Sequence record: MN871449.1
Length of the DNA stretch: 64,000 nt
Strand: one strand, 5' to 3'
Shown here piece after piece: positions 15,385 through 32,952 of the stretch. Position numbers and translations under genes: made by a program. Positions within the stretch are counted from its first letter, which is position 1, and each line of letters opens with the position of its first letter. A model generated the notes under the pieces. It saw only the letters and a program-made list of their open reading frames with translations. It was not told the DNA's origin and did no database searches.

Positions 15385-15705
15385 ATGCGCTTTTCAAAAA
15401 TGAACTCCGTGGTCTTTCTCGAGAACGATATCGAATCAAACGACGTCCGCAGTATCGAGCTGATCTTTTCCCACGATGACGCCAACGCGCTGGGCGATCG
15501 CCTTCTCCTGCCCGGGGATTCGTACAACACCGTTGTATTAGTTCGTAAAGCAGACCATAGCGTCTACGAGGCGGCATTGAAGATACTGCAAACCTACGAC
15601 GACTACATCTTCACGCTGACCAATCATTACGTCGAACCCGCGAGCATCGTTTGCTTCACTATCGATGCGGGCGTCTTCAAACGGTTAGTTAAAAACATTT
15701 CCTAA
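15385..15705 (+). CDS. Hypothetical protein (106 aa)
   Basis: GAGG RBS, tightly spaced in the operon. Confidence 0.7.
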   Translation: MRFSKMNSVVFLENDIESNDVRSIELIFSHDDANALGDRLLLPGDSYNTVVLVRKADHSVYEAALKILQTYDDYIFTLTNHYVEPASIVCFTIDAGVFKRLVKNIS

Positions 15706-15746
15706 GACATTCTTTTACCTCAACAATTCTACCGGAGTATCCAAAA

Positions 15747-16136
15747 ATGATCACTTTCACTGATAAACAAACCCTCGCTATCACCGCTGCTCGCATCGCC
15801 GGTTTACTGAGAGCGCTTTACCACGAAACTGAATTCGTCGATACTCCGGCACAGATTCTTTTCGAAACCGAATACTACCCGCTTTATGCGCAGCTGCAAG
15901 ACATTGCCTTCGACCGTAAAGGTGATATCAAATGGCTGTTACTGAACGCCATTGAAAACACCAACGATAAATACCGTGACATCGAATGTTACAAAACCGA
16001 TCTGGGCTTTGGTATTCAGATTCGTAAAAACGTTCGCATCGAAGTTGCTTCTCGTCAGGAAGCATTGCGCCCAGGGAAAGAAGTTGGTTTCGATTTCCCT
16101 TCAGAAATTCGTATCAAAATGGCTGAAGCCGCTTAA
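15747..16136 (+). CDS. Hypothetical protein (129 aa)
   Basis: GGAG RBS; expression-type codon usage. Confidence 0.75.
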   Translation: MITFTDKQTLAITAARIAGLLRALYHETEFVDTPAQILFETEYYPLYAQLQDIAFDRKGDIKWLLLNAIENTNDKYRDIECYKTDLGFGIQIRKNVRIEVASRQEALRPGKEVGFDFPSEIRIKMAEAA

Positions 16137-16204
16137 TCCTATTTACACTTCCTTCGGTCGTTTGACCGAAGGACTATGCTAACTAAACCAATAAGGAATT
16201 CAAA

Positions 16205-16570
16205 ATGAACTTTACTCAGAACGTTGCCAAACAATGGGACTCAGCGAAAGAAAAAGAAAATACTATTGTCCCTAAGATGGTTCTTAGTCGTCACTACGCC
16301 AAAAAGCTCCGGGCGACTATCGCCGCTGACCTTGAAGAAAATCAGGGCGAAGATATTCTGGTCCGTGTCATCGATATTGACGACGGTCTTCTTCAGATCT
16401 GGTTAGGCAATCGTCACTACTGGAAGCTAACTCGCAGTCAGGCGTTTCGTTTGATGTTACGTTGCGAAGCTTTCTTAGCGAAACGTCAATCTGATCGACT
16501 GGTGATGTCTTTTAACCAAGTGCGTTTTTCTCAAATTCAGCTGATGGCGGTAAATAAAAATGGCCGTTGA
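16205..16570 (+). CDS. Hypothetical protein (121 aa), tandem paralog A
   Basis: AAGGA RBS; WKLTRSQAFRL...LAKRQ matches the next gene. Confidence 0.75.
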   Translation: MNFTQNVAKQWDSAKEKENTIVPKMVLSRHYAKKLRATIAADLEENQGEDILVRVIDIDDGLLQIWLGNRHYWKLTRSQAFRLMLRCEAFLAKRQSDRLVMSFNQVRFSQIQLMAVNKNGR

Positions 16571-16925
16571 GATTCAAGTTTACGGGTATCGAGATATGGT
16601 TATCGAGCCCCGTGAAATGAAAGCGCTCTATAACGCGCTGAATGACAAGCTAACCGACTCTATCAAAACCCCTGGTCATTTACTGACGTTGGAATTACCG
16701 ACGCTGAGAGAGCGTCTCATCGCTTCTGAGAACAATATCATCCGTATCTCCACGGGCGCTTACTGGGGGTTCTGGAAATGTGTCACGCGCAAAGAGATTG
16801 TCTGGGACTTAACCCGGCTACAAGCAATCAAACTGCGGGCGGTGCTGGAACGTGCGTTGGCGAAACGAAAACGGAGCCGTATTACTGTCAGTAAACGGTT
16901 TCTCGAGATCGTTCCGATCAGCTGA
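16560..16925 (+). CDS. Hypothetical protein (121 aa), tandem paralog B
   Basis: Overlaps the previous stop; WDLTRLQAIKL...LAKRK. Confidence 0.75.
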   Translation: MAVEIQVYGYRDMVIEPREMKALYNALNDKLTDSIKTPGHLLTLELPTLRERLIASENNIIRISTGAYWGFWKCVTRKEIVWDLTRLQAIKLRAVLERALAKRKRSRITVSKRFLEIVPIS

Positions 16926-16957
16926 AAAGAGAGGGGTTCGCCCCTTTCTTTTTTTTT
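16925..16957 (+). terminator. Intrinsic terminator
   Basis: AAAAGAGAGGGG-TTCG-CCCCTTTC-T9; one mismatch from the copy at 37300. Confidence 0.8.
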
Positions 16958-16978
16958 GTTTCAAATTGAATTAAAAAC

Positions 16979-16995
16979 TATATCACGTTATTGAA
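16979..16995 (+). promoter_or_regulatory. Phage early promoter motif
   Basis: TATATCAC-GT-TATTGAA, after a terminator and 24 nt before gene 17020. Confidence 0.7.
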
Positions 16996-17019
16996 TGTAC
17001 TAACTAGAGGAGTATTACC

Positions 17020-17427
17020 ATGGCCATTCGCCACTATGACGTTGCGGAACGTTTCCTTCGCTCTTTTGGATTCAGTGATGACTATATCGATCGGTTAATC
17101 CCTTCTGAGAAAAATCCAGAGATTTCTGACAATGAACTCTTTGAACGTCTCTCTCGTTACTTAGAATCCCCGAAACGCCGTCCGCTGCTCTTACGCATTA
17201 AAGTCTTACGGACGTTTGACGAACTGACGGAACCCGAGCAACGCCTACTGAAACGTTTTATGAAAAACCCGATGTTGTTCTGGTTAGGAGATCGTTTCGG
17301 TTTACGAGTGGATCGGTCATTGAAAGAGATTCGTCTCTTTAAGGAACAAATGGAACGGAACGATTTCAAACTTCCCGATTCGATGGTCAGTGAGATTTTG
17401 AAGGTAATCGCGTTGTACAAAAGTTGA
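17020..17427 (+). CDS. Hypothetical helical protein (135 aa)
   Basis: GAGGAG RBS; appears monocistronic. Confidence 0.8.
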   Translation: MAIRHYDVAERFLRSFGFSDDYIDRLIPSEKNPEISDNELFERLSRYLESPKRRPLLLRIKVLRTFDELTEPEQRLLKRFMKNPMLFWLGDRFGLRVDRSLKEIRLFKEQMERNDFKLPDSMVSEILKVIALYKS

Positions 17428-17460
17428 TTCATCGAAAAATAAATTTATTTATATTTATCT

Positions 17461-17580
17461 GTTGACCTTCGCACGGCGAAGCCTGTGCGTTAATTAGACC
17501 GTAGGTCCATCCTTAGAGTTATGACTCTAAAAGTCATAACGGTTAAGTAGTTGACCTTGACTTCGATTTGCAAAGTCACG
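17461..17580 (+). ncRNA. Candidate structured non-coding element (five consecutive hairpins)
   Basis: Stems at 17470-17489, 17497-17507, 17518-17540, 17541-17556 and 17558-17578 in a 200-bp ORF-free gap; GTTGACCTT repeated at 17461 and 17550. Confidence 0.4.
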
Positions 17581-17626
17581 TTACCTTCTCTTGATTTGTT
17601 AGACTAACCTTAATACGGAAAAGAAA

Positions 17627-18274
17627 ATGAGTAAACCAGAACTTAAAATCTTCCAGACCGGTAACTTCACGTTGGATAACGCTACGGAAACTTTGACCCT
17701 GACCGTTCCAATCAGTGCGGAAGAAACTCAAAACTTCGAGAACGTGCCACACCCAGGGAGCAAGTTATTGGACGAACCCGTTGTCTTCAGTAGTGTTATC
17801 GGTCAGTACGGTAGCGCAACCGCTATTGAGGAACTGAATGCAGCGGTAGGAGAGGATCACAAAGATCTCTTCTGGGTACTCTTTGAACTCTGTGCGACTT
17901 TCCCAACAGTGCAGCAGATTGCTCTTGATCTCACTCGCCCGGATATTCCTGCGGTGATGTTGAAGGTGAAAGAAGGCGTGCACAAATACGCATGGTGGCA
18001 TCGAGGAACAACACACATCTTCGTGGCGGCAGAAGTATTGTCATTGCCTGTCGATAACGTCGAGGGGAACAGTATACCGTTTAATCCGGGTGAGCTGCTG
18101 TACGCATTCAGTGTCGTCGCGGAACATATCCGACTCGGTACTACGCGTTTTGTTATTGGTAATCTGGTTGACCGTGAACGCGTCTATATCAGCTTCTTTG
18201 ATCACGAGATTGTCGATTTCCGGACGAATCTTGATTTCCCTTTGATGAAAGAGCGGGTGATTTCGGTACAATAG
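17627..18274 (+). CDS. Hypothetical protein (215 aa)
   Basis: Long ORF with upstream GGA; no motif recognised. Confidence 0.75.
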   Translation: MSKPELKIFQTGNFTLDNATETLTLTVPISAEETQNFENVPHPGSKLLDEPVVFSSVIGQYGSATAIEELNAAVGEDHKDLFWVLFELCATFPTVQQIALDLTRPDIPAVMLKVKEGVHKYAWWHRGTTHIFVAAEVLSLPVDNVEGNSIPFNPGELLYAFSVVAEHIRLGTTRFVIGNLVDRERVYISFFDHEIVDFRTNLDFPLMKERVISVQ

Positions 18275-18370
18275 TTCGCCTTTCTATAGTCAGGGTATGC
18301 CCGGTTACGTTGAGATACGTAACCAAGGGTTACCTTGGCTTTCTTTTGATTTGAATAGGAAATATGAGAA

Positions 18371-19051
18371 ATGCCAAACTATTTCTGGGCGCTTGTCCTT
18401 TGCCTGGTAAGCATTATTGCTACCCCAGCAACCGCATCTGTCTCGACTAATAGCGTAGGCTTTGCAAAGCATAGCGATACCTTATATCGAGTATCTCAAA
18501 AAACCGACGTTAAAATGATTGACTTGGTTACCATGGCTTCCATTGAAAGTACGATGGGCGCCGGTATGCACAATAAACACTCTTCAGCAAAAGGACTATT
18601 TGGTTTTACAGATCGAACGTGGCGAGCCACGGTAAAGAAGTACGGTAAACAGTACGGGGTCAAACCCGGAACCAGTGTAAAAAACTCACGTGCGAACACG
18701 CTTATGGCGGTAGCGTACATGAAGGAGAACAAAGAGTTTTTAGAGCGTTCACTCCAGCGTCAGGTCGGGATCAATGAAATCTACATGGCCCATCTGTTAG
18801 GACCCGGCGGTGCAGTGAAAATATTGAAGGCACGAAATGATCGGTTAGCGGTAAGGGTGGCAGGAGGCGCAGCAGGTAATCGCGCGTACTTCTACACTGA
18901 TAAAGGTAAACCCCGCACAGTTGCCGGATTCAAGCAATACGTCAACTCCGTCGTTTCAAATCACCGCAAGGCGTATAAACAGGAAGTCACGCTTTACGCG
19001 TTTCAGAACCAGTTACCTATAGCCCTTGCAGATAACCATTCACCTCGCTGA
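18371..19051 (+). CDS. Lytic transglycosylase (SLT/phiKZ gp144-like catalytic domain) with N-terminal signal peptide
   Basis: Hydrophobic leader FWALVLCLVSIIATPATA with an A-x-A cleavage site; ASIES (catalytic Glu), SSAKGLFGFTDRTW, and YMAHLLGPGGA. Confidence 0.8.
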   Translation: MPNYFWALVLCLVSIIATPATASVSTNSVGFAKHSDTLYRVSQKTDVKMIDLVTMASIESTMGAGMHNKHSSAKGLFGFTDRTWRATVKKYGKQYGVKPGTSVKNSRANTLMAVAYMKENKEFLERSLQRQVGINEIYMAHLLGPGGAVKILKARNDRLAVRVAGGAAGNRAYFYTDKGKPRTVAGFKQYVNSVVSNHRKAYKQEVTLYAFQNQLPIALADNHSPR

Positions 19052-19063
19052 ATAAAATACTCC

Positions 19064-19091
19064 CCTCTAGAGACGTTTCCGTCTCTAGAGG
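19064..19091. terminator. 12-bp hairpin after the transglycosylase gene
   Basis: CCTCTAGAGACG-TTTC-CGTCTCTAGAGG; poor U-tract. Confidence 0.5.
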
Positions 19092-19119
19092 TTCTATAAT
19101 CGTTAAGAGGGTTTTTTTG

Positions 19120-19461
19120 ATGAAATTGCCTATGAGTATAATTAAAACTACACCTTGTGTTAAATTTTATCGCAATGAAAAAAGAATCATCGCTACCTTT
19201 TCCCGGGCGGTTCGTAGAAGTTGTCGAATACCTGACGTCAAGGTAGAAATTGGAACCCTGGAAAATAAAGAAATGTTTCGATTCCGGTTTCTTCCTTTAG
19301 AGAGTAACGTGGGAAGACGCGTCCGTGCCAACGAGACATCATGGCCTGTTAAATACGTTTTTGATAAGGAATGGATTCCATTGGAAGGCGGAAGTCGGAT
19401 CGTTGTCACGTTGGCGCCGGATGGATGGTGGTACGGAAATTACACCGACAGGATCGAATAA
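19120..19461 (+). CDS. Hypothetical protein (about 113 aa)
   Basis: GAGGG RBS; abuts the next gene. Confidence 0.65.
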   Translation: MKLPMSIIKTTPCVKFYRNEKRIIATFSRAVRRSCRIPDVKVEIGTLENKEMFRFRFLPLESNVGRRVRANETSWPVKYVFDKEWIPLEGGSRIVVTLAPDGWWYGNYTDRIE

Positions 19462-19462
19462 G

Positions 19463-19981
19463 ATGACGACAAGTGAATACCTGCATTTGTTGAGGAAAGT
19501 CTACAAGGAGTTCTTTCTGACTAACAACCTAAATCTCGGTCAACATTGTTGGGACTGGGGGATAGTGCGGGCGAAAGAAATCGGTTTTGTTCCAGGCGAT
19601 GATTTTGATATCTGGTTATACGGTTCAGCGGATCAAGGCCCTGGCGAAGTCTATTCAGGGTGTTGCTTAGCCATCAGTGATTTAGGTAAAGAACTGTGTA
19701 CCGATCACCCGGAAGAATTTTTATTTTATTACCAAGAGATTTCTTACGACGACAATACGCCGACTGATTTTTGTTTTGGTCATTCGTTATTGAAAGTAGG
19801 GGATTATTATTACGATCTTTTATACCCTGATGGGTTATTAGATTATCGGGATCATTTCCTTTGGCAAGAAGACGAGGAGAATCGGTTTTACCTTCTCAGT
19901 CCTTCGGAAGCCCCAGAACAAATCGGTTACCAACCAGAAGCTTTCAAACTTTTTAAAGGATTACTCAGTGATTACATTTGA
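19463..19981 (+). CDS. Transglutaminase/papain-like Cys-His-Asp protein, paralog of 54306
   Basis: SGCCLAI...GHSLLKVGDYYYDLLYPDG. Start placed at ATG 19463, one base after the previous stop (track start 19325 overlaps the upstream gene). Confidence 0.55.
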   Translation: MTTSEYLHLLRKVYKEFFLTNNLNLGQHCWDWGIVRAKEIGFVPGDDFDIWLYGSADQGPGEVYSGCCLAISDLGKELCTDHPEEFLFYYQEISYDDNTPTDFCFGHSLLKVGDYYYDLLYPDGLLDYRDHFLWQEDEENRFYLLSPSEAPEQIGYQPEAFKLFKGLLSDYI

Positions 19982-20420
19982 ACTAACAGGCTGCGCCGGT
20001 CTACAAGAGCGCCGTGAAGACGGGATGGTTGCGACTATCCATCACGGAAACCTGCTCTTGGCAAAGGACGGTAAACTGATCGCGGAACTCTCGGCAGAGA
20101 ATTACCGGGAAGTCAAAGGTCAAGTCACTAAAATGGAGATCTACAAGCTCTACAGTGATCTTCAAAATAAAGTGATGTGCCGCACCTACCGTATTGTTTC
20201 TCGCCACCCTGTCGCGTATGATGACAGAAAATTCGAGTATGAATATCGTTGGCTGGAAGACAAGAAAGAAGACGTGGGCTACCTTACACTCGAGTTCAAT
20301 ACGGGAACGGTCGCAGAAGGACTGCGTAAAAAGCGGATTACTTCGCCCACTAACCGTGACGACCTGAACGATAAGATTCTTCGTTTGGTGTTAGAGAACG
20401 CGTTAATCGCTGGTCAATAA
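19968..20420 (+). CDS. Hypothetical protein (150 aa)
   Basis: GTG start overlapping the upstream stop; no motif recognised. Confidence 0.7.
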   Translation: MITFELTGCAGLQERREDGMVATIHHGNLLLAKDGKLIAELSAENYREVKGQVTKMEIYKLYSDLQNKVMCRTYRIVSRHPVAYDDRKFEYEYRWLEDKKEDVGYLTLEFNTGTVAEGLRKKRITSPTNRDDLNDKILRLVLENALIAGQ

Positions 20421-20454
20421 CCGTACCGCCACGCCAGTAAATAAGGAGCGAGTA

Positions 20455-21009
20455 ATGTACTATAATTTTGATCTGGGCAAAATTAGAGCGAAGAGTTACG
20501 TGACACAAGGGAACGTCATCCATGAATTACGACACTACGGCTCGTTAGTGACGTCGTTTAAAACGAAAGAGGCGAAAACTGATATTCAGAACATCGTCAA
20601 AGAACACTACAGTACGCTGGTACTTAAATACGCGCTGAAAGAACCGAACAAACGATTCCCAGTTACCCAGTTGGGGGTTGACATAGCAGACCTCTATCTT
20701 TCCATGACCGGTGACGACATCAATCGTCTCGCGTCAGAAGGAGGGTATTGCCTTAACGTTCGCGGGTTCACCGAGCAGTGGGACATTCTCACCGAGAAAC
20801 ATCCGTTACCGTTAAGAGCGATCAACGCAGGGTTACGGTTAGAGCTTGGTAAAGTTTTTCTCTACGCAACGTTCGAAAGTCAGTTCGGACAGATCAGGCT
20901 GAAGGAACAACTCCCGCCTGGATTAGATATCCAACTGAAGGCTGCGGTGCTCGCTAAATACATTAAAGAGTTGAATTCTTTCCAACGTCTTTTGGCCGGG
21001 TTTTCATAA
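20455..21009 (+). CDS. Hypothetical protein (184 aa)
   Basis: AAGGAG RBS. Confidence 0.75.
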   Translation: MYYNFDLGKIRAKSYVTQGNVIHELRHYGSLVTSFKTKEAKTDIQNIVKEHYSTLVLKYALKEPNKRFPVTQLGVDIADLYLSMTGDDINRLASEGGYCLNVRGFTEQWDILTEKHPLPLRAINAGLRLELGKVFLYATFESQFGQIRLKEQLPPGLDIQLKAAVLAKYIKELNSFQRLLAGFS

Positions 21010-21045
21010 TTTATTCCTCTTGCTATTTATAGTGCATCTGTCACG

Positions 21046-21075
21046 AAAGAAGGTGTTTTCACACCTTCTTTTTTT
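21046..21075 (+). terminator. Intrinsic terminator
   Basis: AAAGAAGGTGT-TTTC-ACACCTTCTTT plus T-tract. Confidence 0.75.
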
Positions 21076-21182
21076 ATTTTTTCTGTTTCTTTTTTGGCCT
21101 TCGGACGTTACTTATGCAAGGTAGGCGAAATGACCAGTGGTTCCCTACCGTCCAAATTAACTACAGAATAACGAGCTTCTTC

Positions 21183-21800
21183 ATGGGTAATAAAAAGAGT
21201 AACGAAAATGAAGTAGCCATTTTCTTTAAGGTCGATGAGGCGAGTTTCCGAAGACTAAAAGAAAGTACAGGCGACTATTACCAAATAACGCAATCAGAAA
21301 CGAATGCGTTAACAACAAACAATACCCGCATTACCGTTCGGGTTAGACGAACTGAAGTTTTCTCCGAAAGCAAAGACGTTGCTGGTCAAGTGGTTTATGA
21401 AGCGGCGACGAAGTATCGTTTACCTTACGATGCTAAAACTCAGACATCTCGGTGCATTGAACTTGAAAAGGTCATTACACCAGAAGAGTATGAAATGGCA
21501 TTACCGTTCGGCGAACGTCTTTACCAAAAAAGACGCTCACTGATTGATCTGGGTAACGGGATAATTGGGGAACTGGACTGGTACTTCGATAAAGAAGAGA
21601 ATGACTTTGGCCGCTATTGTAAACTCGACATCAATACACCACCAGAGGGATTCACTACCGGACAGATTACGGCGCTGTTGAAAAAACTCCCTGATCTCGG
21701 GATTGTCATTTCTGAACTGATCAACCCGCCATGGATCGCCAGTCCGCGAATCAAAGATCGCATTAGCGAATTAATGGAAAAACGTTGGAATTTACTCTAA
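21183..21800 (+). CDS. CYTH-like (triphosphate tunnel metalloenzyme) protein
   Basis: N-terminal ExE (ENE), TVRVR, YEAATK, IELEKVI, YQKRR and GELDWY appear in the order expected for CYTH strands; start placed at ATG 21183. Confidence 0.5.
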   Translation: MGNKKSNENEVAIFFKVDEASFRRLKESTGDYYQITQSETNALTTNNTRITVRVRRTEVFSESKDVAGQVVYEAATKYRLPYDAKTQTSRCIELEKVITPEEYEMALPFGERLYQKRRSLIDLGNGIIGELDWYFDKEENDFGRYCKLDINTPPEGFTTGQITALLKKLPDLGIVISELINPPWIASPRIKDRISELMEKRWNLL

Positions 21801-21830
21801 TAAATACACACTGGCCACGGGAGGCGTTGA

Positions 21831-22292
21831 ATGAGTACTACAGTTCGTTTTACCGATGGCCATCTTCTTGATCTCACTTTAATGAACGACACGGATTGTC
21901 TTTTAACCCTTTCGCTTTCCTCGAAGACAATTCGACATAGCGTGGTAGTTGCCATTGACGGAACACTCGTTGTTTACCGTATTCTCAGGAAGAGTAAAGA
22001 AGCTGGTCCGATTAGAAGCCTGTTAAATCAGGTAGAAGAGAACCTTTCTTCGCATTATCATTTCGAGATGAAAGGGTTAGTCTGGGGGCAGCCTGCAATC
22101 ACCCGGATCAAAGGGCGATGGTGGTGGCTCTTAAACGAAATCCCAATCATTGATGAGTTGGGTAACTTATCTGCTTTATTCCAGGAAATTTTAGACAAGT
22201 ATAACATTGTTGTTACCGATAAGACGCAGTTGCTCCAATATTTTAATAGCGTTAGAAATACGGCTGTGTTTAAAAGATTAGAAACAAACTGA
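21831..22292 (+). CDS. Hypothetical protein (153 aa)
   Basis: GGAGG RBS. Confidence 0.75.
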   Translation: MSTTVRFTDGHLLDLTLMNDTDCLLTLSLSSKTIRHSVVVAIDGTLVVYRILRKSKEAGPIRSLLNQVEENLSSHYHFEMKGLVWGQPAITRIKGRWWWLLNEIPIIDELGNLSALFQEILDKYNIVVTDKTQLLQYFNSVRNTAVFKRLETN

Positions 22293-24085: not shown

Positions 24086-25054
24086 ATGTCATCGAATAAC
24101 ACAGTAACTATTTACGGCGCAGGTGGTGCGGGTATCGACATCCTCACTAAACTCATGCGCACCGATCTTTCTGAACTTGCTAACGTCAAAGAAGCGTATG
24201 TTGACGGTAGTCGTTCCAACGTTTCCGAGCGGTCTGTTCAAGACCCTGACAAATGGTATTTCCTCGAGGGCGTAGACGGCGCAGGGAAAATCCGTAAAAC
24301 CAACTACGACGTCACGAACCGAAGCATCAGCGACATTCTCTTTAAGTTGAAGCCGTCCGATCTCAACATTCTGATCTTCTCCGCCTCCGGCGGCAGCGGT
24401 TCGGTCATTGGTCCGAAACTGATCGAAGCGCTTTATGCGCAGAATAAAGCGGTGCTGGTCTTTTTAGTCGGTTCGACAGAATCGGGTAATACCACCGAAA
24501 ACACCATGAAGACTATTTCGTCGCTGCGTAACATTGCGATCAAGAACAATCAGTTCTGTAACGTCTGTTACGAGAGCAATGAGAACAACCTGCGCAACGC
24601 CGAAGTCGATGCGATCATGATCGCTACCATCCGCGCCGTTCTGGATCTTTATTCCGGGAAACATCATGGACTGGATTCTGCGGACGTACTGACCTGGGCG
24701 AAACCCGTTCTTGGTGCAGGCGTAAGCCCGGAGCTCGGTCTCCTTGACGTCTTCCAGGACCGTGATGATGCAGTGAGCGTTAACGCACCTATTTCAGTTG
24801 CGGAACTCTACGGCGACAACAAGCCGGTAGCCGGTACTATCCCAGCGGACTATAACACGTTCGGTACCCGTAAACGTACAGGGGAAGATTCGCTTTATTT
24901 TGTCATTCATACAGATGGACTGAATGAGATCTTAATGGAACTTCGCCAAACGTTTGACGACTACGAACAACGTCGCGCTGCACGCGATAAGAAGTCCAAG
25001 GCTGCGCAGAACTTTATCCGTGGCGATGTTCAGGGCGACGGGATGGAACTCTAG
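24086..25054 (+). CDS. phuZ: Phage tubulin PhuZ
   Basis: YGAGGAG (G1 loop), SASGGSGSVIGP (tubulin signature loop), GLDSADV (T7 loop) and a C-terminal DGMEL tail like other PhuZ proteins. Confidence 0.92.
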   Translation: MSSNNTVTIYGAGGAGIDILTKLMRTDLSELANVKEAYVDGSRSNVSERSVQDPDKWYFLEGVDGAGKIRKTNYDVTNRSISDILFKLKPSDLNILIFSASGGSGSVIGPKLIEALYAQNKAVLVFLVGSTESGNTTENTMKTISSLRNIAIKNNQFCNVCYESNENNLRNAEVDAIMIATIRAVLDLYSGKHHGLDSADVLTWAKPVLGAGVSPELGLLDVFQDRDDAVSVNAPISVAELYGDNKPVAGTIPADYNTFGTRKRTGEDSLYFVIHTDGLNEILMELRQTFDDYEQRRAARDKKSKAAQNFIRGDVQGDGMEL

Positions 25055-25102
25055 TCGTTAGTATGTAGGACTTTTATCTGCTTCAATCATTTAAGATCAT
25101 CA

Positions 25103-25134
25103 ACGGAGCGGGGTTTTCCCGCTCCGTCTTTTTT
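25103..25134 (+). terminator. Terminator after phuZ
   Basis: ACGGAGCGGG-GTTTT-CCCGCTCCGT then CTTTTTT. Confidence 0.8.
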
Positions 25135-25164
25135 ATTTTGTTTTGTTGGAAAAGAAATAGGACA

Positions 25165-25181
25165 TATATTACCCTATTGAA
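25165..25181 (+). promoter_or_regulatory. Phage early promoter motif driving the small-gene array
   Basis: TATATTAC-CC-TATTGAA. Confidence 0.7.
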
Positions 25182-25258
25182 CATAGTTGTAATCGCTTTG
25201 TACGGGTTTATCAATTTATTTGATAGATAGTACTACTGACAGTAAAAAGAGGCTTAGA

Positions 25259-25669
25259 ATGACTTACAGGAAGTCTGGTGACGTCATGATTGTTAAAGGC
25301 GAGATCCCAAAGATCTTTTACTGGATTAATTCACCTTATCACGGTATTTTCACCGTGAAAGAAATTTTCTACGCGACCTGGATGACGTGGTTTCATTTCC
25401 GGGAAAGAAAGCATTGGGCGCAAGGGATCTATTTGTTAACCGATAAGGTAGAACCCAGCAAAATGCTACCGGGTAGAGATAAACGTGATTTTAACGCAAT
25501 GATCGAAGCGATCTTCAATCGAGTTAATGAAAAAGAAAAGGAACTCACTACGCTCTTTCAATTGGAGGGTGTCCCGCGTCATTATCGTGTCCTCGACTTT
25601 TCTTTCCAACACAATCATTTTGAAATTACACTGGGAACTGAAGACCATGTTGATTGTCATCGATATTAA
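25259..25669 (+). CDS. Array member 1 (hypothetical, about 136 aa)
   Basis: ATG 25259 with GAGG; C-terminal strand-turn-strand RVLDFSFQHNHFEITL. Confidence 0.7.
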   Translation: MTYRKSGDVMIVKGEIPKIFYWINSPYHGIFTVKEIFYATWMTWFHFRERKHWAQGIYLLTDKVEPSKMLPGRDKRDFNAMIEAIFNRVNEKEKELTTLFQLEGVPRHYRVLDFSFQHNHFEITLGTEDHVDCHRY

Positions 25670-26051
25670 GCATTTTCTCGATATGACACCGACAATGGAT
25701 CGGTTCTATCGGTTAAGGATTTTAGCCCACTGGTTAGACCGGACGTATAACACGATTCCGCCTGAGTATTTAATTATTGATAATGACCATTGGGAGACAG
25801 AGAAGATATGGCAAGTAGCCAGGGTATTGGAAAAAGAGTACGGTGGCGTACCATTGAAACTTCCGGTTAATCTGCTTCATATCGAATCGCTCGATATACA
25901 ACGGAACGCATTAATGGTTTGGGTAGATGATGAAGAGTTTCGTCAGAGGAATCCTGATTTATGGCAGTGCAAAAATATCTCTTCGAAATCCCCCCGGCGC
26001 TTAAGGTCTTCACCGACGGCTATAAGGGTCTCTGGCGGGATCAGATTATAG
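25647..26051 (+). CDS. Array member 2 (hypothetical, 134 aa)
   Basis: Starts MLIVIDI; contains IESLDIQRNALMVWV. Confidence 0.7.
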   Translation: MLIVIDIKHFLDMTPTMDRFYRLRILAHWLDRTYNTIPPEYLIIDNDHWETEKIWQVARVLEKEYGGVPLKLPVNLLHIESLDIQRNALMVWVDDEEFRQRNPDLWQCKNISSKSPRRLRSSPTAIRVSGGIRL

Positions 26052-26365
26052 ACGCTTTCCTTTCTACCGCGTACCACTGGGAAAAAGGAAAAGCTAAAGA
26101 TTATAACAAACTGTTCATTGAGATTTATTACTCGAACAACATTGACCCGCTGGAAAGCGATTTTGAAACGATTCCCGATGATCCTTATTATCGGGACCAG
26201 TTATCGTTTTACATGTCTCTTCAGGAAGAAATTGAAAAAATGAAAAATACAGGCGTATTAGAAAAAATCCTTAGCGATCTTCGTTCTCAATGGGATCGAT
26301 ACGGTATTTACGGTGAATGTTACACGGAACGGATGAACTCACGTACCTATCTTGTTTATCGATAA
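25961..26365 (+). CDS. Array member 3 (hypothetical, 134 aa)
   Basis: KYLFEI near the N-terminus; ends CYTERMNSRTYLVYR. Confidence 0.7.
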   Translation: MAVQKYLFEIPPALKVFTDGYKGLWRDQIIDAFLSTAYHWEKGKAKDYNKLFIEIYYSNNIDPLESDFETIPDDPYYRDQLSFYMSLQEEIEKMKNTGVLEKILSDLRSQWDRYGIYGECYTERMNSRTYLVYR

Positions 26366-26375
26366 GGTCTCTATT

Positions 26376-26879
26376 ATGCGTTATGTTATTGATATTGATT
26401 ATCTCGCCAGACGACTATCGTCCATTCTCTATTCAGTCCGTCGCCAACACAGTGTTATCGACCGGTACGCTGACAAGAACCTTCGTGTAGAAGATCTTAA
26501 GGAAACCGCCCTCCGTCTCTTTTGGAATGCCATCAATAAAGACGCTAAATATCCTTGGGAATGTTGGGACGACGATGCTGCTATTCGTGGTTGGTTTAAA
26601 GGTTACACGTTAGAGCCTATTGGTTTTAATCCGTACAACGAAGAGATCGTGGATGAGCCGTCCCAAGAACTCTACCGCGAAGTTATCGATATCTTTATCG
26701 TGTTCGCGGTAGAGTATTTTCGTGACATGGGGATACGAAAAAATAGGTTCTGGGATGAAATTGTGGTGGTCGAAGTCAGAAACAACGCATTGATTGTCGA
26801 GAACCTTGGCGATTGGCGAATTCGGGATTGGGAAAGGATACAACGAGAAAAACGTGAAGAACAAAATAGAGATTATTGA
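26376..26879 (+). CDS. Array member 4 (hypothetical, 167 aa)
   Basis: ATG 26376 with AAGGT; MRYVIDI...IVVVEVRNNALIVE. Confidence 0.7.
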   Translation: MRYVIDIDYLARRLSSILYSVRRQHSVIDRYADKNLRVEDLKETALRLFWNAINKDAKYPWECWDDDAAIRGWFKGYTLEPIGFNPYNEEIVDEPSQELYREVIDIFIVFAVEYFRDMGIRKNRFWDEIVVVEVRNNALIVENLGDWRIRDWERIQREKREEQNRDY

Positions 26880-27216
26880 CATCGCGTTATTACGACCTCG
26901 CCTCGAGAAGATCTACCGTTGCTTTTTCTCTGACACTTTAGAGCCGGTGACGTTTGGCGAGGCGTATGGTTTACTTTTGCTCTTTAGTCTGGAGAAACTG
27001 ATTTATGGTTACTCTACGATGGAACAGCGGTTACTTTCCGTTTTTTCTACGCCTGAACTAAATTTATCTGATACTGACGCACTTCTGGAATTGTCGCTAC
27101 AAGAAATCAAAACGTTTCTTGAGAAAACAAGCGAAGAACGTATCATTGACTATTATGGATGGGAGATCTCACGTGACCAACGGTCGATTAGATTATTCAC
27201 AAACCTTCATCTATGA
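26854..27216 (+). CDS. Array member 5 (hypothetical, 120 aa)
   Basis: GTG 26854; EIIDI...WEISRDQRSIRLF. Confidence 0.65.
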   Translation: MKNKIEIIDIALLRPRLEKIYRCFFSDTLEPVTFGEAYGLLLLFSLEKLIYGYSTMEQRLLSVFSTPELNLSDTDALLELSLQEIKTFLEKTSEERIIDYYGWEISRDQRSIRLFTNLHL

Positions 27217-27586
27217 CCTGCATTGGGACGCGTCAGAAATAAAGAAAATAGAAAACCTATACTCAATACACAGCCGGGAGATTATTCTCCCGGCTTTTCT
27301 ATTTTCTTTATCACGTTACCAAAGAACCTTCTTCATGCCCTTCTTTTTCAAGGCTAACGAAGAAGCGGAAAAGGTCTTAGATAACTTATTGTGCTCCGAC
27401 GGAATGGAACATCTGGACGAGAAGCTCAAAGAAGAATTCAAGCGAAATTTCTACATCGATATTCAATTATTAGGCTCGAAGATATCAAGGAAGACTTTAG
27501 CCATGAAAGATATCGTTTTGAGTCCTGATCAAATCAGAAACGTAAGATTCGTTAGAGGAGACCTCTATGTTACCGTCAGTGACTGA
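27173..27586 (+). CDS. Array member 6 (hypothetical, about 137 aa)
   Basis: In-frame GTG 27173 with GGGAG 7 nt upstream; TFIYDL...IRNVRFVRGDLYVTV. Confidence 0.65.
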   Translation: MTNGRLDYSQTFIYDLHWDASEIKKIENLYSIHSREIILPAFLFSLSRYQRTFFMPFFFKANEEAEKVLDNLLCSDGMEHLDEKLKEEFKRNFYIDIQLLGSKISRKTLAMKDIVLSPDQIRNVRFVRGDLYVTVSD

Positions 27587-27977
27587 AACTACGACACGTC
27601 TTTTTGTTTTGCCTTATCGAAGAGAGACCGCTGCCATACTGCACGAACTGATGTATTGCGATTTACTCTATCGCCGACTTGTTCTGCAAATGATATTCGA
27701 CTTCATTATCGGCACCGACGAAGAAAATCTATCGTTATCGGGTACGCGGCGTATCAGAGTTGAAATCGAGAATTTCTTACGTTCGTATCCGCACGCTAAG
27801 ATGCCGGATGTTACGACGCAAGAGTTGATAGAGACAGCAGAAGAACTCTTCGTCTCGTTTTATCGTGATTATCGACGGGAGATACGAAGTAACTTTTCAC
27901 GTTCCCCCCGTATTGATTTTGTAGAATTACGCCACCACGGCATCGCCTTCCAACTGACTGTTCGCAGAGGATCTTAA
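27567..27977 (+). CDS. Array member 7 (hypothetical, 136 aa)
   Basis: GAGGAG RBS; RLFVLP...IDFVELRHHGIAFQL. Confidence 0.7.
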   Translation: MLPSVTETTTRLFVLPYRRETAAILHELMYCDLLYRRLVLQMIFDFIIGTDEENLSLSGTRRIRVEIENFLRSYPHAKMPDVTTQELIETAEELFVSFYRDYRREIRSNFSRSPRIDFVELRHHGIAFQLTVRRGS

Positions 27978-28441
27978 TGTCCCGTTTCTTTCGTACTATC
28001 TTAATCTTTACGGTGAAGGATTGGCCAACGTCAAACTTTCACCTTTTCTTCAGTCGATATATCGATGGGTTTAATCGTTATATCCCCCGAAACAAAATTC
28101 GTTTTGAAGTGACTGACTTTATCGGCTGTACCATCGCTTATGTATTGGACGTTAAGCACTTCGGTCAGCAGGAGGCATCGGAAAGACTCGATGACACGAT
28201 TGATCTTTTCTTTGTCCCTGATGCAGATGATCCCAGCGATCAGTTACGGTTAGATAGGGGTACTCGACACCGGTTGCTTTGTTACATTGAAGATATGGCT
28301 GAAGTGATTGCGACCGATTTACTGTTGTCCTTCGAGAGGAGTCAACTCCGATATCACGAAGATATCGATATCGGCGACGTACTCTTACGAAACAACGCAA
28401 TCTCATTTGTAGTGGAGGACCTTAGCCGGGAGGTATGGTGA
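27977..28441 (+). CDS. Array member 8 (hypothetical, 154 aa)
   Basis: TAATG overlap; TILIFTV...IGDVLLRNNAISFVVE. Confidence 0.7.
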   Translation: MSRFFRTILIFTVKDWPTSNFHLFFSRYIDGFNRYIPRNKIRFEVTDFIGCTIAYVLDVKHFGQQEASERLDDTIDLFFVPDADDPSDQLRLDRGTRHRLLCYIEDMAEVIATDLLLSFERSQLRYHEDIDIGDVLLRNNAISFVVEDLSREVW

Positions 28442-28863
28442 AAAACAAAAATGCAACGTTGGTTGTTTTACCCTGCCAGTCTTTTTATTCTGGTTTATCG
28501 ACGCTCCTAGATAATATGCCAAGAGATGTCTGGATAAAAGCACGTGATCTTTCGTCGCTTTTTGTCGAAGATATTTTGGAACCGGAAAAAATGGCGATGC
28601 ACCCCGAGGTCTTAAAAGGATTCTTTATTGCGAGTGATCCTGGTTTACTCGAGTACGGCATGGAAATCATTCTGGAAAACTACGATTGTCTCCATACTCG
28701 ACTTTACCGTGAGATGGAGAAAGTCCATCCCTTCCTATTAGAGAAACGTTATCATCTTGAGAACTTATTCCTGTACACGGGAAGTTATTCTCTTGGTTTA
28801 AGGATTGAAGAACATGAAAATAAAAGTTCTTACTTCCCTTGTACGACTCCCTTTAATCTTTAG
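28435..28863 (+). CDS. Array member 9 (hypothetical, 142 aa)
   Basis: GGAGG RBS; TLVVLP...LENLFLYTGSYSLGLRI. Confidence 0.7.
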   Translation: MVKNKNATLVVLPCQSFYSGLSTLLDNMPRDVWIKARDLSSLFVEDILEPEKMAMHPEVLKGFFIASDPGLLEYGMEIILENYDCLHTRLYREMEKVHPFLLEKRYHLENLFLYTGSYSLGLRIEEHENKSSYFPCTTPFNL

Positions 28864-29164
28864 TTATTTTTATCAGGGTCTTTTAGACGAAGTCCAATGC
28901 GATGAAGATGATGATACGGTTATTGACATCGAATACCTAAAGGACTCGACCAGGAAGCTCGTATTGGAAGTCATTGACAGCGGATTGAAAACTACTGTTC
29001 CTTCTATTGAACACGGTGAGATTGCTGGTCATCTTTTTCTCACCCACGAAACCTTGAAAGAACGAGTGGAAGAAATCACCAGTAAAACAACCTTTCGTTA
29101 TGTAGACCTCGAGTACTTCGACTCTACTACGTTAATGTTGCTTTTCGAATCGGGAGAAAATTAA
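28814..29164 (+). CDS. Array member 10 (hypothetical, 116 aa)
   Basis: ATG 28814 with AAGGA; SLVRLP...YVDLEYFDSTTLMLLF. Confidence 0.7.
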   Translation: MKIKVLTSLVRLPLIFSYFYQGLLDEVQCDEDDDTVIDIEYLKDSTRKLVLEVIDSGLKTTVPSIEHGEIAGHLFLTHETLKERVEEITSKTTFRYVDLEYFDSTTLMLLFESGEN

Positions 29165-29587
29165 ATGACGTCTACAGACCTCATCCTCGGTAAATTTACA
29201 CTGAACTCCACGGTGACCTTTCAGGTTTATCCGTCTGCGCTTTACGGGGATGTTTTCCGTAACGTGGTTCCGACTGACATTGTGTCGGCCAGAGGTGCTA
29301 CTAAATTCGGTATTGACCCGGAAGCAGAGCACGCGAAGGTTTATCCTCTTCTGCCATCGGGTAGCGTTGAAGACAATGCCCGTTCTTACAACTGGTTGGT
29401 ATTGGCCTTAGAAGACGGCACAGAACGCGTCATCGGATTACCCTGGATCAAAGTTGATACGATCAACGTTGTTGAGACAGTGAATGCCCTTGTCACTATT
29501 CCCGGGATTGGTACAGGCGATATTGAAAAGATCCGGCTGGCGATTAACAGCGCAGGCTTCAACAATTTCACCATCGTCACCAGTTAA
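29165..29587 (+). CDS. Conserved chimallivirus protein upstream of the DNA polymerase (phiKZ gp49 position)
   Basis: 140 aa, beta-rich, GGGAG RBS; synteny. Confidence 0.6.
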   Translation: MTSTDLILGKFTLNSTVTFQVYPSALYGDVFRNVVPTDIVSARGATKFGIDPEAEHAKVYPLLPSGSVEDNARSYNWLVLALEDGTERVIGLPWIKVDTINVVETVNALVTIPGIGTGDIEKIRLAINSAGFNNFTIVTS

Positions 29588-29594
29588 CTATTCT

Positions 29595-29650
29595 CTTCTC
29601 CTGTAACCGAAAGGTTACAGGAGAAGGTTATCTTTTCTTTTTTTCTTTTT
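29595..29650 (+). terminator. Intrinsic terminator
   Basis: CTTCTCCTGTAACC-GAAA-GGTTACAGGAGAAG (GNRA loop) followed by a T-rich tract. Confidence 0.7.
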
Positions 29651-29699
29651 TCAGTGACCGTACTATTCCTGTAGAAGACCGATTACATAGGACGATAGC

Positions 29700-31916
29700 G
29701 TGAAAGTTTCTAACCCATTTACGCGCACCGCTAAGGATTACCATCGAGACCTTGGCGTGCACGAGTCGTACATTATTCAAACTGCTTTATTCATACAACG
29801 CAGCACTGGAAGACCTTTCGAAGAATGTCGTGACTTTGTTGTCGAGGAACTGAAAAACCCGGATAACGGCGTGACCGATCCTGTTTTTTGCATGTTGGAA
29901 CGCGATGAGAATCTGGATCAAAAACCGATTATGGTACCTTTCTCACAGTACCTCAAAGACATTCTCGATAACGAATGGTTAATGGCACCTACGTTCACGA
30001 CCGTGTTACCGCCGCACCAAAAGTTATCGTTACTCTCTGAATATATCAAAGGTAACTTGAAAAAGCGCTCCGCCGAAAAACATGAAATGTTTGAAGCGAA
30101 GAAAGTCGGTAACTTTATTAAGGCAACCTTCCACAACAACAATCAGAACAACAAAAAGATTCTGAACAACGCCATCTCCGGTAACCACCGTTCTGAGCAC
30201 TCACCGCTTTACGACCGCTCAACGCACCCGGTATTGACAAGTTGCTGTCGTATTGCCAACGGTATTGCCAACTCCAACAATGACCGTTTATTGTCTGGCT
30301 CTCGCCACTATTGGCGACCTGATGTTGTCTACGCTAACTTGACCAGTATTCTTGAACTGACCGATTGGGCAAAAGTAGAAAATACCGTTAAGAAGTTTAA
30401 TCTGCATATCCCGTCGGTTGAAGAAACGTTAGCGGTACTGTCGTATTCGTCTGACCTCTACTGGCGATCAGAAGGGGGAGACCGCAATTTAAAACGTTTC
30501 CTGAAAGGCTGTAGCGATTACGAACGAGCAGCGTTCGTTTACATGGGCGACCTTTATCATATTCGTCAGTTCAACGAGGCGATTGTAAGGGATCTGATTC
30601 GTGGTTTAGTCACTCCAGCAGAAACGCCGGTACCTGACTACGAAGGATGGATGAAGTTTGTCGATGAAGACACCATCGCACAGATCACGGTTATGTTCCC
30701 GGAAATCATTGGCGATAAAAACCCGTTCCACGAAGAAGTTATTGCTAAAGCCGATTACTGGCGTTTAGGTTCCACCTGTGCACTCATTTACCAGACGCTG
30801 GACAAATATAAAGAAATCATCGATACGTTCCTGATGTCAAGAAACATCCCGTTCCTGATTTCTGACTTCCCCCATGCCGTTAGACGCAGTGGTGTAGGGT
30901 CTGATACCGACTCCGCTATCTTTACGGTTCAGGATTGGATTCGTTGGTACTCTGATAATGATTTGCTAACGAAAGAAAACATCATTCTAGCTGAAGGGAT
31001 TGCGTTCCTTGTCTCGCAGACGACCACGCATAACCTTGCTACCATGACCGTAAACATGGGTGTTCAGGACGAGAAAGAAGTCTTCCGTCTGGCAATGAAG
31101 AACGAATTCCTTTTCCCGGTGTTCATGTTGACCAGTCGTGCTAAGCACTATGCGGCAAACAAACGCGTACAAGAAGGGGTCTATATCGAAGACCGAGAGA
31201 AGAAAGGCGTAGAGCTCATTGCTTCCAACTCACCAGCCGGAGTACGTAAAGATCTTGATTTGATGATCGAAGAGATTGTCGACAGTGTTACGGAAGGGAA
31301 AATGTTGGAACTGAGCCGTTACTTACGGTGGGTAGCCCGGTGGGAGTATACGATCTACGAATCGATTCGTAAAGGGGAGACCACGTACCTTAAAGCGGCA
31401 CGTGTTAAAGAAGAGGAAGGGTACACTAAGAAGACCGAAGAACAGAATACGCCGTATCTGAACTACGAACTGTGGCAAGAAGTCTTTGCGCCGAAGTTTG
31501 GTCTTATTGAACCGCCGCCATACTCAGCGTTGTCGTTCAGTATTATCCACGATACGAAAACCAAAACGGAGAAATGGTTAGCGAACTGGAAAGATCAGGA
31601 AATGGCGAAACGAATGCGACAATTCCTGGCAGCGAAGAATAAGACTTATTTGGGTCGTATCCTGCTGCCAGAAAGTATTGTCATGTCAATCGGGATTCCA
31701 GAGGATATCCTTGAGGCGACAAACATTCGTAAAATTATCGGCAGCGCCATGTCACCTTTCTACCTGGTTCTTGAGTCACTGGAATACTACCTCTTTGATA
31801 AAGACCAATCTAAACTGGTCTTTGATCAAATTTCTCGTGAGGATGCTTTCTCTGACTTTAACGAAGTGGAATCAGCACTTCGTCCAACAGAACCTGTAGA
31901 GTATCTTGAGGATTAA
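29700..31916 (+). CDS. Family-B DNA polymerase, polymerase-domain subunit of the split chimallivirus enzyme (phiKZ gp50-like)
   Basis: KILNNAISG (motif B-like), SDTDS (motif C), YAA and KGVE; no exonuclease or motif A region, as expected for a split enzyme. Confidence 0.88.
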   Translation: MKVSNPFTRTAKDYHRDLGVHESYIIQTALFIQRSTGRPFEECRDFVVEELKNPDNGVTDPVFCMLERDENLDQKPIMVPFSQYLKDILDNEWLMAPTFTTVLPPHQKLSLLSEYIKGNLKKRSAEKHEMFEAKKVGNFIKATFHNNNQNNKKILNNAISGNHRSEHSPLYDRSTHPVLTSCCRIANGIANSNNDRLLSGSRHYWRPDVVYANLTSILELTDWAKVENTVKKFNLHIPSVEETLAVLSYSSDLYWRSEGGDRNLKRFLKGCSDYERAAFVYMGDLYHIRQFNEAIVRDLIRGLVTPAETPVPDYEGWMKFVDEDTIAQITVMFPEIIGDKNPFHEEVIAKADYWRLGSTCALIYQTLDKYKEIIDTFLMSRNIPFLISDFPHAVRRSGVGSDTDSAIFTVQDWIRWYSDNDLLTKENIILAEGIAFLVSQTTTHNLATMTVNMGVQDEKEVFRLAMKNEFLFPVFMLTSRAKHYAANKRVQEGVYIEDREKKGVELIASNSPAGVRKDLDLMIEEIVDSVTEGKMLELSRYLRWVARWEYTIYESIRKGETTYLKAARVKEEEGYTKKTEEQNTPYLNYELWQEVFAPKFGLIEPPPYSALSFSIIHDTKTKTEKWLANWKDQEMAKRMRQFLAAKNKTYLGRILLPESIVMSIGIPEDILEATNIRKIIGSAMSPFYLVLESLEYYLFDKDQSKLVFDQISREDAFSDFNEVESALRPTEPVEYLED

Positions 31917-32952
31917 TCCCCGTTATCGGTGTCAGGTAACCTCCGTTAACAAAACGCGCGTACCAACGTTCCAGTTGAGTTTTTACACTACCGTTGTCTT
32001 TAGACCCTGTTTCACCAGAAAGACGGGACAGGGTACTTAAGTACGGTAAATTTGCCAATGTGTAAAGACCGAGGTTCTGACGGTTGAAAAAGATATCCGG
32101 GATCGTAATCGCTTCAAGAAGTGTTTCTGTAAATAACCCGGGGATTTGTGCCGGAAGGTCAATGAAGCGCCGCGGAGCGCTTCTGGCGCGTTGTAACCAC
32201 TGTTCCCAGACTTTATCAACCAGTGGACGTAAATCGTAGATTGCCAAGCCGTGTCGTGCGGCGTCATCGTTAACCGGGATATACCCTGTCGACAACCGAA
32301 GACGATTGAAGAAACAAAAATTCATGTCCTCTTCGATCATGTTGACTAAAGGGTACTGATAAACAAATTGGTTGATAGAAACGGGATGCGGGTTCGCTTC
32401 TGTACCGACGTTAAACTGCGACCAGTGCCGATACTGGACTGCCAGAAGACCGATGTCGATAGACAGGAAAGCGTTTCCTTTATAGTGACTAAAGTGCTGC
32501 CCGTCACGGGCGTTAAAAGAAAGCCCTGTCAGATTGTGCGAAATTGGGCGTACTGGAATAAGTTCTTGCCAGTAGTTCTTTGCGTCGAATCGATAAGGGA
32601 GATCTTTTTCCTCAACGATGTAGAACTCGGTCATACCTTGACCGTAAAACCATGGTTTACTGGCTTTACCAGAAAGCACGGTTTCCGTATTGAGGTTCAA
32701 CGCCCTGTGTGTCAGTTTACTGGCGGAGTGACAGAATCGATAATACTGTTCATCGTTCATGTCTACCCGTGACGGTAAATGTTGAAGTATCTGAATCAGT
32801 ATATGATCACTCTCAACAGCACGGATGCTATTACGGTAATGTTGTTTAATGTTCTTTAAATTAATGCCGGCATTGTTGCGCAGCAAGGTGAGTTGTCCCG
32901 GAAAAAACGTCTTCACGGATTGACGGTTTAGAAATTCGAAAGCTGAGATCAT
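31858..32952 (-). CDS. Conserved chimallivirus protein between DNA polymerase and chmA (probably virion-associated)
   Basis: 364 aa, GGAG RBS, opposite strand; synteny only. Confidence 0.55.
   Translation of the reverse strand: MISAFEFLNRQSVKTFFPGQLTLLRNNAGINLKNIKQHYRNSIRAVESDHILIQILQHLPSRVDMNDEQYYRFCHSASKLTHRALNLNTETVLSGKASKPWFYGQGMTEFYIVEEKDLPYRFDAKNYWQELIPVRPISHNLTGLSFNARDGQHFSHYKGNAFLSIDIGLLAVQYRHWSQFNVGTEANPHPVSINQFVYQYPLVNMIEEDMNFCFFNRLRLSTGYIPVNDDAARHGLAIYDLRPLVDKVWEQWLQRARSAPRRFIDLPAQIPGLFTETLLEAITIPDIFFNRQNLGLYTLANLPYLSTLSRLSGETGSKDNGSVKTQLERWYARFVNGGYLTPITGINPQDTLQVLLDEVLIPLR

Follow-up and report, generated by a model that had tools for sequence, protein, structure and literature searches.

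A fast-evolving cassette of ten small genes between phuZ and DNA polymerase in a Klebsiella chimallivirus, several of them probable tandem paralogs

Introduction

Cargo choice by the phage nucleus is an open question. For a block of small genes in one nucleus-forming phage, we asked whether they belong to a single family and what such a family would do. The genes lie in a 64,000-nucleotide (nt) stretch of sequence record MN871449.1, hereafter the window, in which ten consecutive plus-strand open reading frames (ORFs; g01 to g10, together the array) are found between the genes of the tubulin PhuZ and a DNA polymerase. A previous reading made from the nucleotide sequence alone (the sequence-only reading) took the ten for one highly diverged paralog family, and suggested that they could supply interchangeable adaptors, for example in nuclear import, or the subunits of a hetero-oligomer. 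At positions 25100-29700 the window matches Klebsiella phage KpLz-2_45 (Siatvirus, ~297 kb) at 100% identity, and nine sister isolates at 98-100%. The gene order in the record runs from PhuZ through hypothetical proteins to DNA polymerase, a minus-strand gene, and chimallin, and the presence of PhuZ and chimallin around the array therefore identifies a nucleus-forming chimallivirus. We found that the array represents, in this phage, a cassette present throughout the Chimalliviridae, and that g05, g06, g08, g09, and perhaps g07 probably belong, as tandem paralogs that have diverged strongly, to a single superfamily specific to chimalliviruses.

Results

The ten array genes

The array consists of the following ORFs, with lengths in amino acids (aa):

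25259..25669, plus strand: g01, 136 aa, lineage-restricted, with orthologs in FBKp24, 2050HW, L176, L178, and L179
25647..26051, plus strand: g02, 134 aa, FBKp24 ortholog 57% identical
25961..26365, plus strand: g03, 134 aa, with orthologs reaching as far as PCH45 and L092 (HHalign 99.6%)
26376..26879, plus strand: g04, 167 aa, chimallivirus-wide core gene, ortholog of the N-domain of phiKZ gp43
26854..27216, plus strand: g05, 120 aa, family of c06 and the gp43 C-domain
27173..27586, plus strand: g06, 137 aa, probable superfamily member
27567..27977, plus strand: g07, 136 aa, weak or uncertain superfamily member
27977..28441, plus strand: g08, 154 aa, probable superfamily member
28435..28863, plus strand: g09, 142 aa, probable superfamily member, positional counterpart of phiKZ Imp2
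28814..29164, plus strand: g10, 116 aa, with orthologs in seven relatives, at the position of phiKZ Imp4

All ten, placed here as the sequence-only reading had placed them, are genuine genes under purifying selection. Each has a full-length FBKp24 ortholog at 50-71% amino acid identity, compared with 86-91% for PhuZ, the polymerase, and SH3DP, the product of the neighboring gene g11 (91%). The ratio of nonsynonymous to synonymous differences (pN/pS) against FBKp24 is 0.23-0.44 in the array and about 0.1 in core genes, and the nonsynonymous divergence (dN) of the array from FBKp24 is 3-6 times that of PhuZ or DNA polymerase; the ORFs are therefore real, constrained, and fast-evolving genes. The observation that nearly all neighbors overlap also held, with overlaps of 1-91 nt at eight of the nine internal junctions, a gap of 10 nt between g03 and g04, and g10 abutting g11, given the starts used here.

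Unannotated in NC_061418, and with its ortholog likewise unannotated in NC_061421, g02 is a real gene missed in the RefSeq annotation, and its gene call is corrected here; it has more than 20 homologs in total, 15 of which came from profile search. An exhaustive profile search of 1.84 billion representatives found 12 remote homologs of g09, and a deeper search with g10 added only one new homolog. In L180 there is no g10-type gene between the g09 ortholog and the SH3DP gene (L180:5925-6131), so that at least one lineage can dispense with g10. Scans of the ten proteins against Pfam and PHROGs returned nothing below an E-value (E) of 0.04, and the SH3DP family (PF20287) exceeded its gathering score in none of the ten array genes, only in g11.

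The cassette across the Chimalliviridae

Loci for comparison were anchored on PhuZ or the polymerase and were taken from cultured phages (2050HW, Ea277G, PCH45, RAY, Proteus phage 10, a phiKZ-like phage, and phiKZ), IMG/VR, and metagenomes. The SH3DP alignment was too diverged to serve as a seed. PhuZ had tblastn matches in 210 phage records, and a scan of IMG/VR with PhuZ returned nothing beyond the phage itself. One close relative (L092) was added by a metagenome scan, and the contigs of g09 and g02 homologs contributed nine more complete or partial arrays of the same architecture. The sequencing runs that contain the array region are metagenomic, with no infection time courses among them.

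All loci follow one plan, in which phuZ is succeeded by a few (about three) small genes, an ortholog of g04, five to seven further small genes, the SH3DP gene, and the polymerase gene. The 9-11 array genes always occur together, the number after g04 varies by clade, and linkage of the array to the SH3DP gene and DNA polymerase is invariant. By jackhmmer, g04 was present in 66 of 75 loci; most of the other array genes fell into clusters confined to narrow clades, and no array families were merged by jackhmmer over the 75 loci.

Many uncultivated chimalliviruses carry, after the g04 ortholog of a single locus, a series of genes of the families c12 (or c06), c09, c11, c10, and c04, and the families c04, c06/c12, c09, c10, and c11 co-occur in single loci such as L025, L035, L058, and L096. 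HHalign joined c04, c10, and c11 at 98%, c09 and c15 at 97%, and c06 and c12 at 93-97%; with iterated profiles (prefix it_), it_c04 matched it_c15 at 99%, it_c09 matched it_c15 at 99.7%, and it_c06 matched it_c12 at 97%. Judged by these profile comparisons, the genes after the g04 ortholog in other clades are clearly tandem paralogs, and no description of this tandem array was found in the literature consulted on these phages. Weaker HHalign matches, over almost the whole protein length, join the sub-groups to one another and to the g04 family: it_c04 to it_c06 (75%, 103 columns), it_c06 to it_c02 (72%, 112 columns), the gp43 N-domain to it_c06 (50%), and it_c12 to it_c02 (56%), the first three being collinear over 100-114 columns. 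That the sub-families form one superfamily that includes g04 is a reading we consider fairly likely. The aligned consensus of the superfamily has the features given in the sequence-only reading, with a hydrophobic strand at the N-terminus, helices, and a C-terminal hairpin.

This tandem array lies where the window has its corresponding genes, with the g04 ortholog on one side and the SH3DP gene on the other. Its proteins have the same sizes and, again, a conserved strand at the N-terminus and hairpin at the C-terminus. Its members are recognizably paralogous (97-99%), whereas the copies in the window have diverged past direct recognition, and the profile links found for g05, g06, g08, and g09 derive from this array.

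Profile links of the window genes

For the window genes, membership was judged by whether profile-profile similarity to the superfamily (c04, c06, c09, c10, c11, c12, and c15) exceeded that of control small genes. The controls were g11 and nine identically prepared families of small genes from upstream of phuZ; they reached at most 10%, over short stretches only. The following values, from HHalign, exceeded this level: for g05, with a deep alignment, 96.5% to it_c06 (E 7e-10, 107 columns), 73% to it_c04, and 66% to it_c10; for g09, 66% to it_c04 and 53% to it_c10 over 86 columns; for g06, 52-60% to it_c15 over 109 columns; and for g08, 32-49% to it_c15 and 39-48% to it_c09 over 78-96 columns, the values for g06, g08, and g09 being moderate. 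Families at 27% or above numbered four of nine in the array and none of ten among the controls (Fisher p about 0.03), and a two-sequence test with 23 controls gave Mann-Whitney p of 0.006-0.07. The top profile matches of g05 to g09 were nearly confined to array families and ran over 80-110 collinear columns, which was not so for the controls. These profile links suggest that g06, g08, and g09 probably share common ancestry with the superfamily.

Membership of g07 appears doubtful from its HHalign values, 13.6% against c22 over 100 columns and 12.3% against it_c06; a g08 hidden Markov model (HMM) matched g07 orthologs at an independent E-value of 8e-5 in a 133-sequence database, in a non-collinear alignment. 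A word-indexed search with g08 retrieved g08 itself only, and a feature search of the ESM Atlas with g08 gave 0.80, which is noise level. With deep alignments, g01, g02, g03, and g10 showed no superfamily link, their best HHalign values (1.4-2.4%; at most 1.4% for g01, 2.4% for g03, and 2.4% for g10) being the same as that of the SH3DP control, and their membership is unsupported by profile comparison; they may be members that have diverged past detection or unrelated tenants of the cassette. The proposal of one paralog family thus stands for the block from g04 to g09, or about six of the ten genes with g07 weak, though only by way of intermediates from other clades, and gains no support for g01, g02, g03, and g10.

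Comparison with phiKZ

The phiKZ map places PhuZ at gp39, a 357-aa protein at gp43, Imp2 at gp47, Imp4 at gp48, SH3DP at gp49, the polymerase at gp50, and ChmA at gp54. Of these, gp43 (PHIKZ043; L170:6342-7415) is a fusion of an N-domain of the g04 family with a C-domain of the c06 family: g04 matched the N-domain by jackhmmer (E 4e-17), by HHalign (99.4-99.7%), and also by Foldseek, and the C-domain matched the c06 family at HHalign 98.6-98.8%, whereas the other nine array genes reached at most 5.6% against the N-domain. PhiPA3 gp039 and a 325-aa Goslar protein likewise join a g04-orthologous N-domain to a C-domain of the family that g05 matches. Both domains are joined in a single protein in the Pseudomonas phages but come from two separate overlapping genes in the window, and the fusion points to a partnership between g04 and g05. 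On these profile matches, the kinship of g04 with its orthologs and of g05 with the gp43 C-domain family is well supported.

The sequence-only reading had placed import-deficient mutants of phiKZ in small genes of this interval, and this proved right: imp2 and imp4 are orf47 and orf48 (bioRxiv 10.1101/2024.03.27.586873). In the homologous phiKZ interval they immediately precede the SH3DP gene and polymerase, in the positions held by g09 and g10. Import of Nlp1 is lost in imp2 mutants and that of TopA in imp4 mutants, and Imp2 itself enters the nucleus through Imp1 (10.1101/2024.03.27.586873). Both proteins have been termed cargo-specific adaptors (10.64898/2026.09.21.753271), later work reported no disruptive transposon insertions in Imp2 or Imp4, and the adaptors Imp2, Imp4, and Imp5 were reported as restricted to Pseudomonas phages.

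Imp2 (178 aa) and Imp4 (127 aa) resemble the array proteins in size, in being sequence orphans, and in being found in one lineage only; their function has been tested in Pseudomonas phages, and no array gene is detectably similar to either. A jackhmmer search with gp47 found no Imp2 homologs in the clade of the window, g01 to g11 reached at most 4% against the Imp2 profile by HHalign, and the best value of the window families against the Imp4 profile, which is shallow at three sequences, was 1.3%. Since these tests for homology to Imp2 and Imp4 found none, an adaptor function of the array proteins would rest on their position. A tentative link joins Imp2 to it_c15, the superfamily profile matched by g06 and g08 (HHalign 76%, E 2.4e-5, 85 columns).

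Structure models

AlphaFold2 (AF2) models were obtained for g04 and g02, with the PCH45 row left out of the structure-prediction alignment. The g04 model, from a 47-sequence alignment, has a predicted local distance difference test score (pLDDT) of 96.4 and a predicted template modeling (TM) score of 0.88, and shows an alpha/beta fold with a strand at residues 2-6, five helices, a hairpin at 127-146, and a C-terminal helix. No meaningful match to this fold was present in the PDB, AFDB clusters, or Atlas, and g04 represents a new protein family, present family-wide, whose modeled fold is unmatched. In the g02 model (21 sequences), pLDDT exceeds 90 for residues 1-105 and drops under 50 for residues 109-134; the model comprises a strand at residues 2-6, three helices, a hairpin at 78-93, a short helix, and a predicted disordered tail, the last ~26 residues of the protein, that overlaps g03; it had no meaningful match in the PDB.

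The two models have the same order of elements (strand, helices, hairpin, helix). When each was searched against BFVD, its own orthologs ranked first, ahead of a long series of small chimallivirus proteins with TM of 0.3-0.5; six such proteins were common to the top-50 lists of g04 and g02, and the g04 list contained two Imp2 homologs at Foldseek E 0.07-0.19, a weak hint. The strand-helices-hairpin layout that the sequence-only reading had described for the whole array is consequently seen in confident models for g04 and g02, and for the other eight proteins is suggested by hydrophobic patterns conserved among orthologs.

Promoter-like motif, hairpins, and flanking genes

The features around and within the array are as follows:

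24086..25054, plus strand: gene for PhuZ, left boundary, labeled tubulin PhuZ in NC_061418
25103..25127, plus strand: terminator-like hairpin after phuZ, with an 11-bp stem including 8 GC pairs and a T-run
25165..25172, plus strand: promoter-like motif TATATTAC upstream of g01, at a site annotated as a promoter in the FBKp24 record
27272..27305, plus strand: hairpin within g06, with a 10-bp stem and a T-run
29165..29587, plus strand: g11, gene for SH3DP (PF20287, Pfam E 2.6e-37), right boundary
29594..29627, plus strand: terminator-like hairpin after g11, with a 15-bp stem and a T-run, separating g11 from the polymerase gene
29700..31916, plus strand: divergent family B DNA polymerase (PF20286, E 6e-233)

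The promoter-like motif occurs four times in the window (9596, 25165, 41451, and 53312), a count that is not significant by itself (four copies were reached in 7 of 100 shuffles); the last three sites have a longer consensus in common, which suggests a phage promoter class. FBKp24 carries an annotated terminator at the site homologous to the hairpin at 25103-25127. The hairpin within g06 has a 22-nt core that is identical in FBKp24 despite diverged flanks and is labeled a terminator there, and from this conservation it is possibly an internal terminator or attenuator. A promoter at 25165, as the sequence-only reading proposed, is in keeping with both the motif and the FBKp24 annotation, but the conserved hairpin makes it uncertain that this is the only one, and a single uninterrupted operon is not established. 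A g06 start downstream of the hairpin, as annotated in FBKp24, was rejected: in the part before the hairpin, differences from FBKp24 fall mostly in the third position of codons, and the g06 N-terminus evolves as coding sequence.

The neighbor g11 is the ortholog of phiKZ gp49 and is present in all relatives. It lies in the same terminator-bounded block as the array but differs from the array genes in its all-beta SH3-type fold and its slow evolution, and falls outside the array family, its HHalign values against the superfamily being at control level.

Discussion

The explanation that we favor, with confidence just short of even, is that diverged tandem paralogs in the array serve as interchangeable adaptors of the nucleus cycle, chiefly in the selection of import cargo. 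A small sheet common to these proteins, formed by the N-terminal strand and the C-terminal hairpin, would pack on a variable helical bundle, and each protein would be one of a set of exchangeable adaptor subunits in the nucleus-based replication cycle. Their likeliest role would be cargo-specific selection for import via the PicA/Imp1 gate, because Imp2 and Imp4 of phiKZ, the only cassette genes that have been functionally tested, do so; the fast-evolving helical surfaces would then bind different cargos, and the conserved sheet a common partner. Taken separately, cargo-specific import adaptation is the best-anchored functional hypothesis, built on position and weak hints, and is tentative, with doubt outweighing belief. 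The multigene family (MGF) genes of African swine fever virus and the Bcl-2-like families of poxviruses also consist of tandem paralogs that diverge rapidly and can be recognized as related mainly from structure or profiles, and they are comparable to the array by analogy only, having no homology to it and belonging to viruses of other hosts.

Several results weigh against this explanation. As the sequence-only reading had remarked, mutual identity is very low: all-against-all BLASTP of the ten proteins gave no match better than E 0.1, and all-against-all HHalign with shallow profiles of 2-4 sequences stayed below 3%. The best direct pair in the window, g05 and g09, reached a nonsignificant 16% over 110 columns by HHalign, and profile comparison, which related g05, g06, g08, and g09 to families of other clades above control level, yielded no significant pair within the window. 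Superfamily HMMs had no HMMER matches among the window genes, and the link of g05 depends on the alignment used, falling to 27% with a stricter four-member alignment. The AF2 models cover two of the ten proteins, and the g02 model had no significant Foldseek match to g04 orthologs (best E 0.78, TM 0.30); by these models g02 and g04 have a layout in common, not a demonstrated common fold. The two halves of gp43, compared directly, showed no similarity (0.2%). The Imp2 match to it_c15 is at 7% identity, covers helices only, drops to 12% with the non-iterated c15 profile, and is unreciprocated by HMMER, and HHalign detected no link at all between Imp4 and the superfamily profiles.

The likeliest alternative, though we judge it unlikely, is that the ten genes are co-located and mostly unrelated orphan early genes, for example for host takeover or anti-defense, whose layout is a common small alpha/beta one arrived at convergently and of which only g04 and g05 belong to conserved families. 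The absence of direct pairwise similarity within the array and of any profile link for g01, g02, g03, and g10 fits this alternative, as does the fact that HHalign values of 48-66% fall short of conventional certainty, and rapid evolution with no Pfam or PHROGs match is typical of accessory early genes. However, gene number and order are kept across very distant chimalliviruses, unlike in accessory islands, the positional equivalents in other clades are demonstrably paralogous, and the near confinement of g05-g09 profile matches to array families has no counterpart among the controls.

It is very unlikely, in our estimation, that the cassette instead encodes accessory replisome subunits or intranuclear DNA-metabolism factors, co-transcribed with SH3DP and the polymerase, rather than import adaptors. 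The invariant linkage to those two genes would be expected in that case, phiKZ gp49 is described as an SH3 interactor of DNA polymerase whose targeting by antisense oligonucleotides has a strong plaque-formation phenotype (PMC12571901), and Imp2 is itself imported into the nucleus. Yet a terminator-like hairpin stands between g11 and the polymerase gene, replisome parts usually evolve slowly whereas the array genes evolve 3-6 times faster than the polymerase, and Imp2 and Imp4 affect the import of recombinase-like cargo and TopA, not replication as such. Highly improbable is the remaining alternative, that the paralogs co-assemble through edge strands into one hetero-oligomer (of the nuclear shell or PhuZ spindle, for example) as subunits rather than alternative adaptors: the fixed set of genes, the joining of g04-like and g05-like domains in gp43 (fusions often mark physical partners), and an exposed three-stranded sheet that is plausible from the g04 and g02 models would agree with it, but g10 is missing in L180, the number of genes after g04 differs by clade, and divergence this rapid is unusual for obligate subunits.

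Our preferred explanation also has a broader form, which we consider quite unlikely: the entire cassette from phuZ to the polymerase, gp43, Imp2, and perhaps Imp4 included, would be one ancient, fast-diversifying family with an otherwise unseen fold, and its members would be cargo selectors of the import gate, with about ten lineage-specific adaptors in each phage. If one family did include the known adaptors, a candidate adaptor set could be identified in every chimallivirus, the universally conserved g04/gp43 protein would be a leading candidate core factor of import or of the nucleus, and the family would offer a tractable system for the evolution of selectivity. What would be left if the functional link were removed is the g04 family with its unmatched fold, the gp43 fusion, and the corrected gene call of g02.

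Additional observations

The minus-strand gene preceding phuZ belongs to DUF7484, and further upstream, at 15385-22292, there is a second run of small plus-strand genes. One family of that run (c03) is present in 2-3 copies per locus in several other chimalliviruses, for example L022, L046, L087, and L137, and these repeats may be another paralog cassette. Downstream of the array, a 364-aa gene on the minus strand (31858-32952), without a Pfam match, shares 59 nt with the 3' end of the DNA polymerase gene, an arrangement that is alike in all relatives. The FBKp24 record also carries an annotated suppressor-type tRNA (tRNA-Sup-TTA; L173:1042-1121) that is syntenic with the downstream part of the window.

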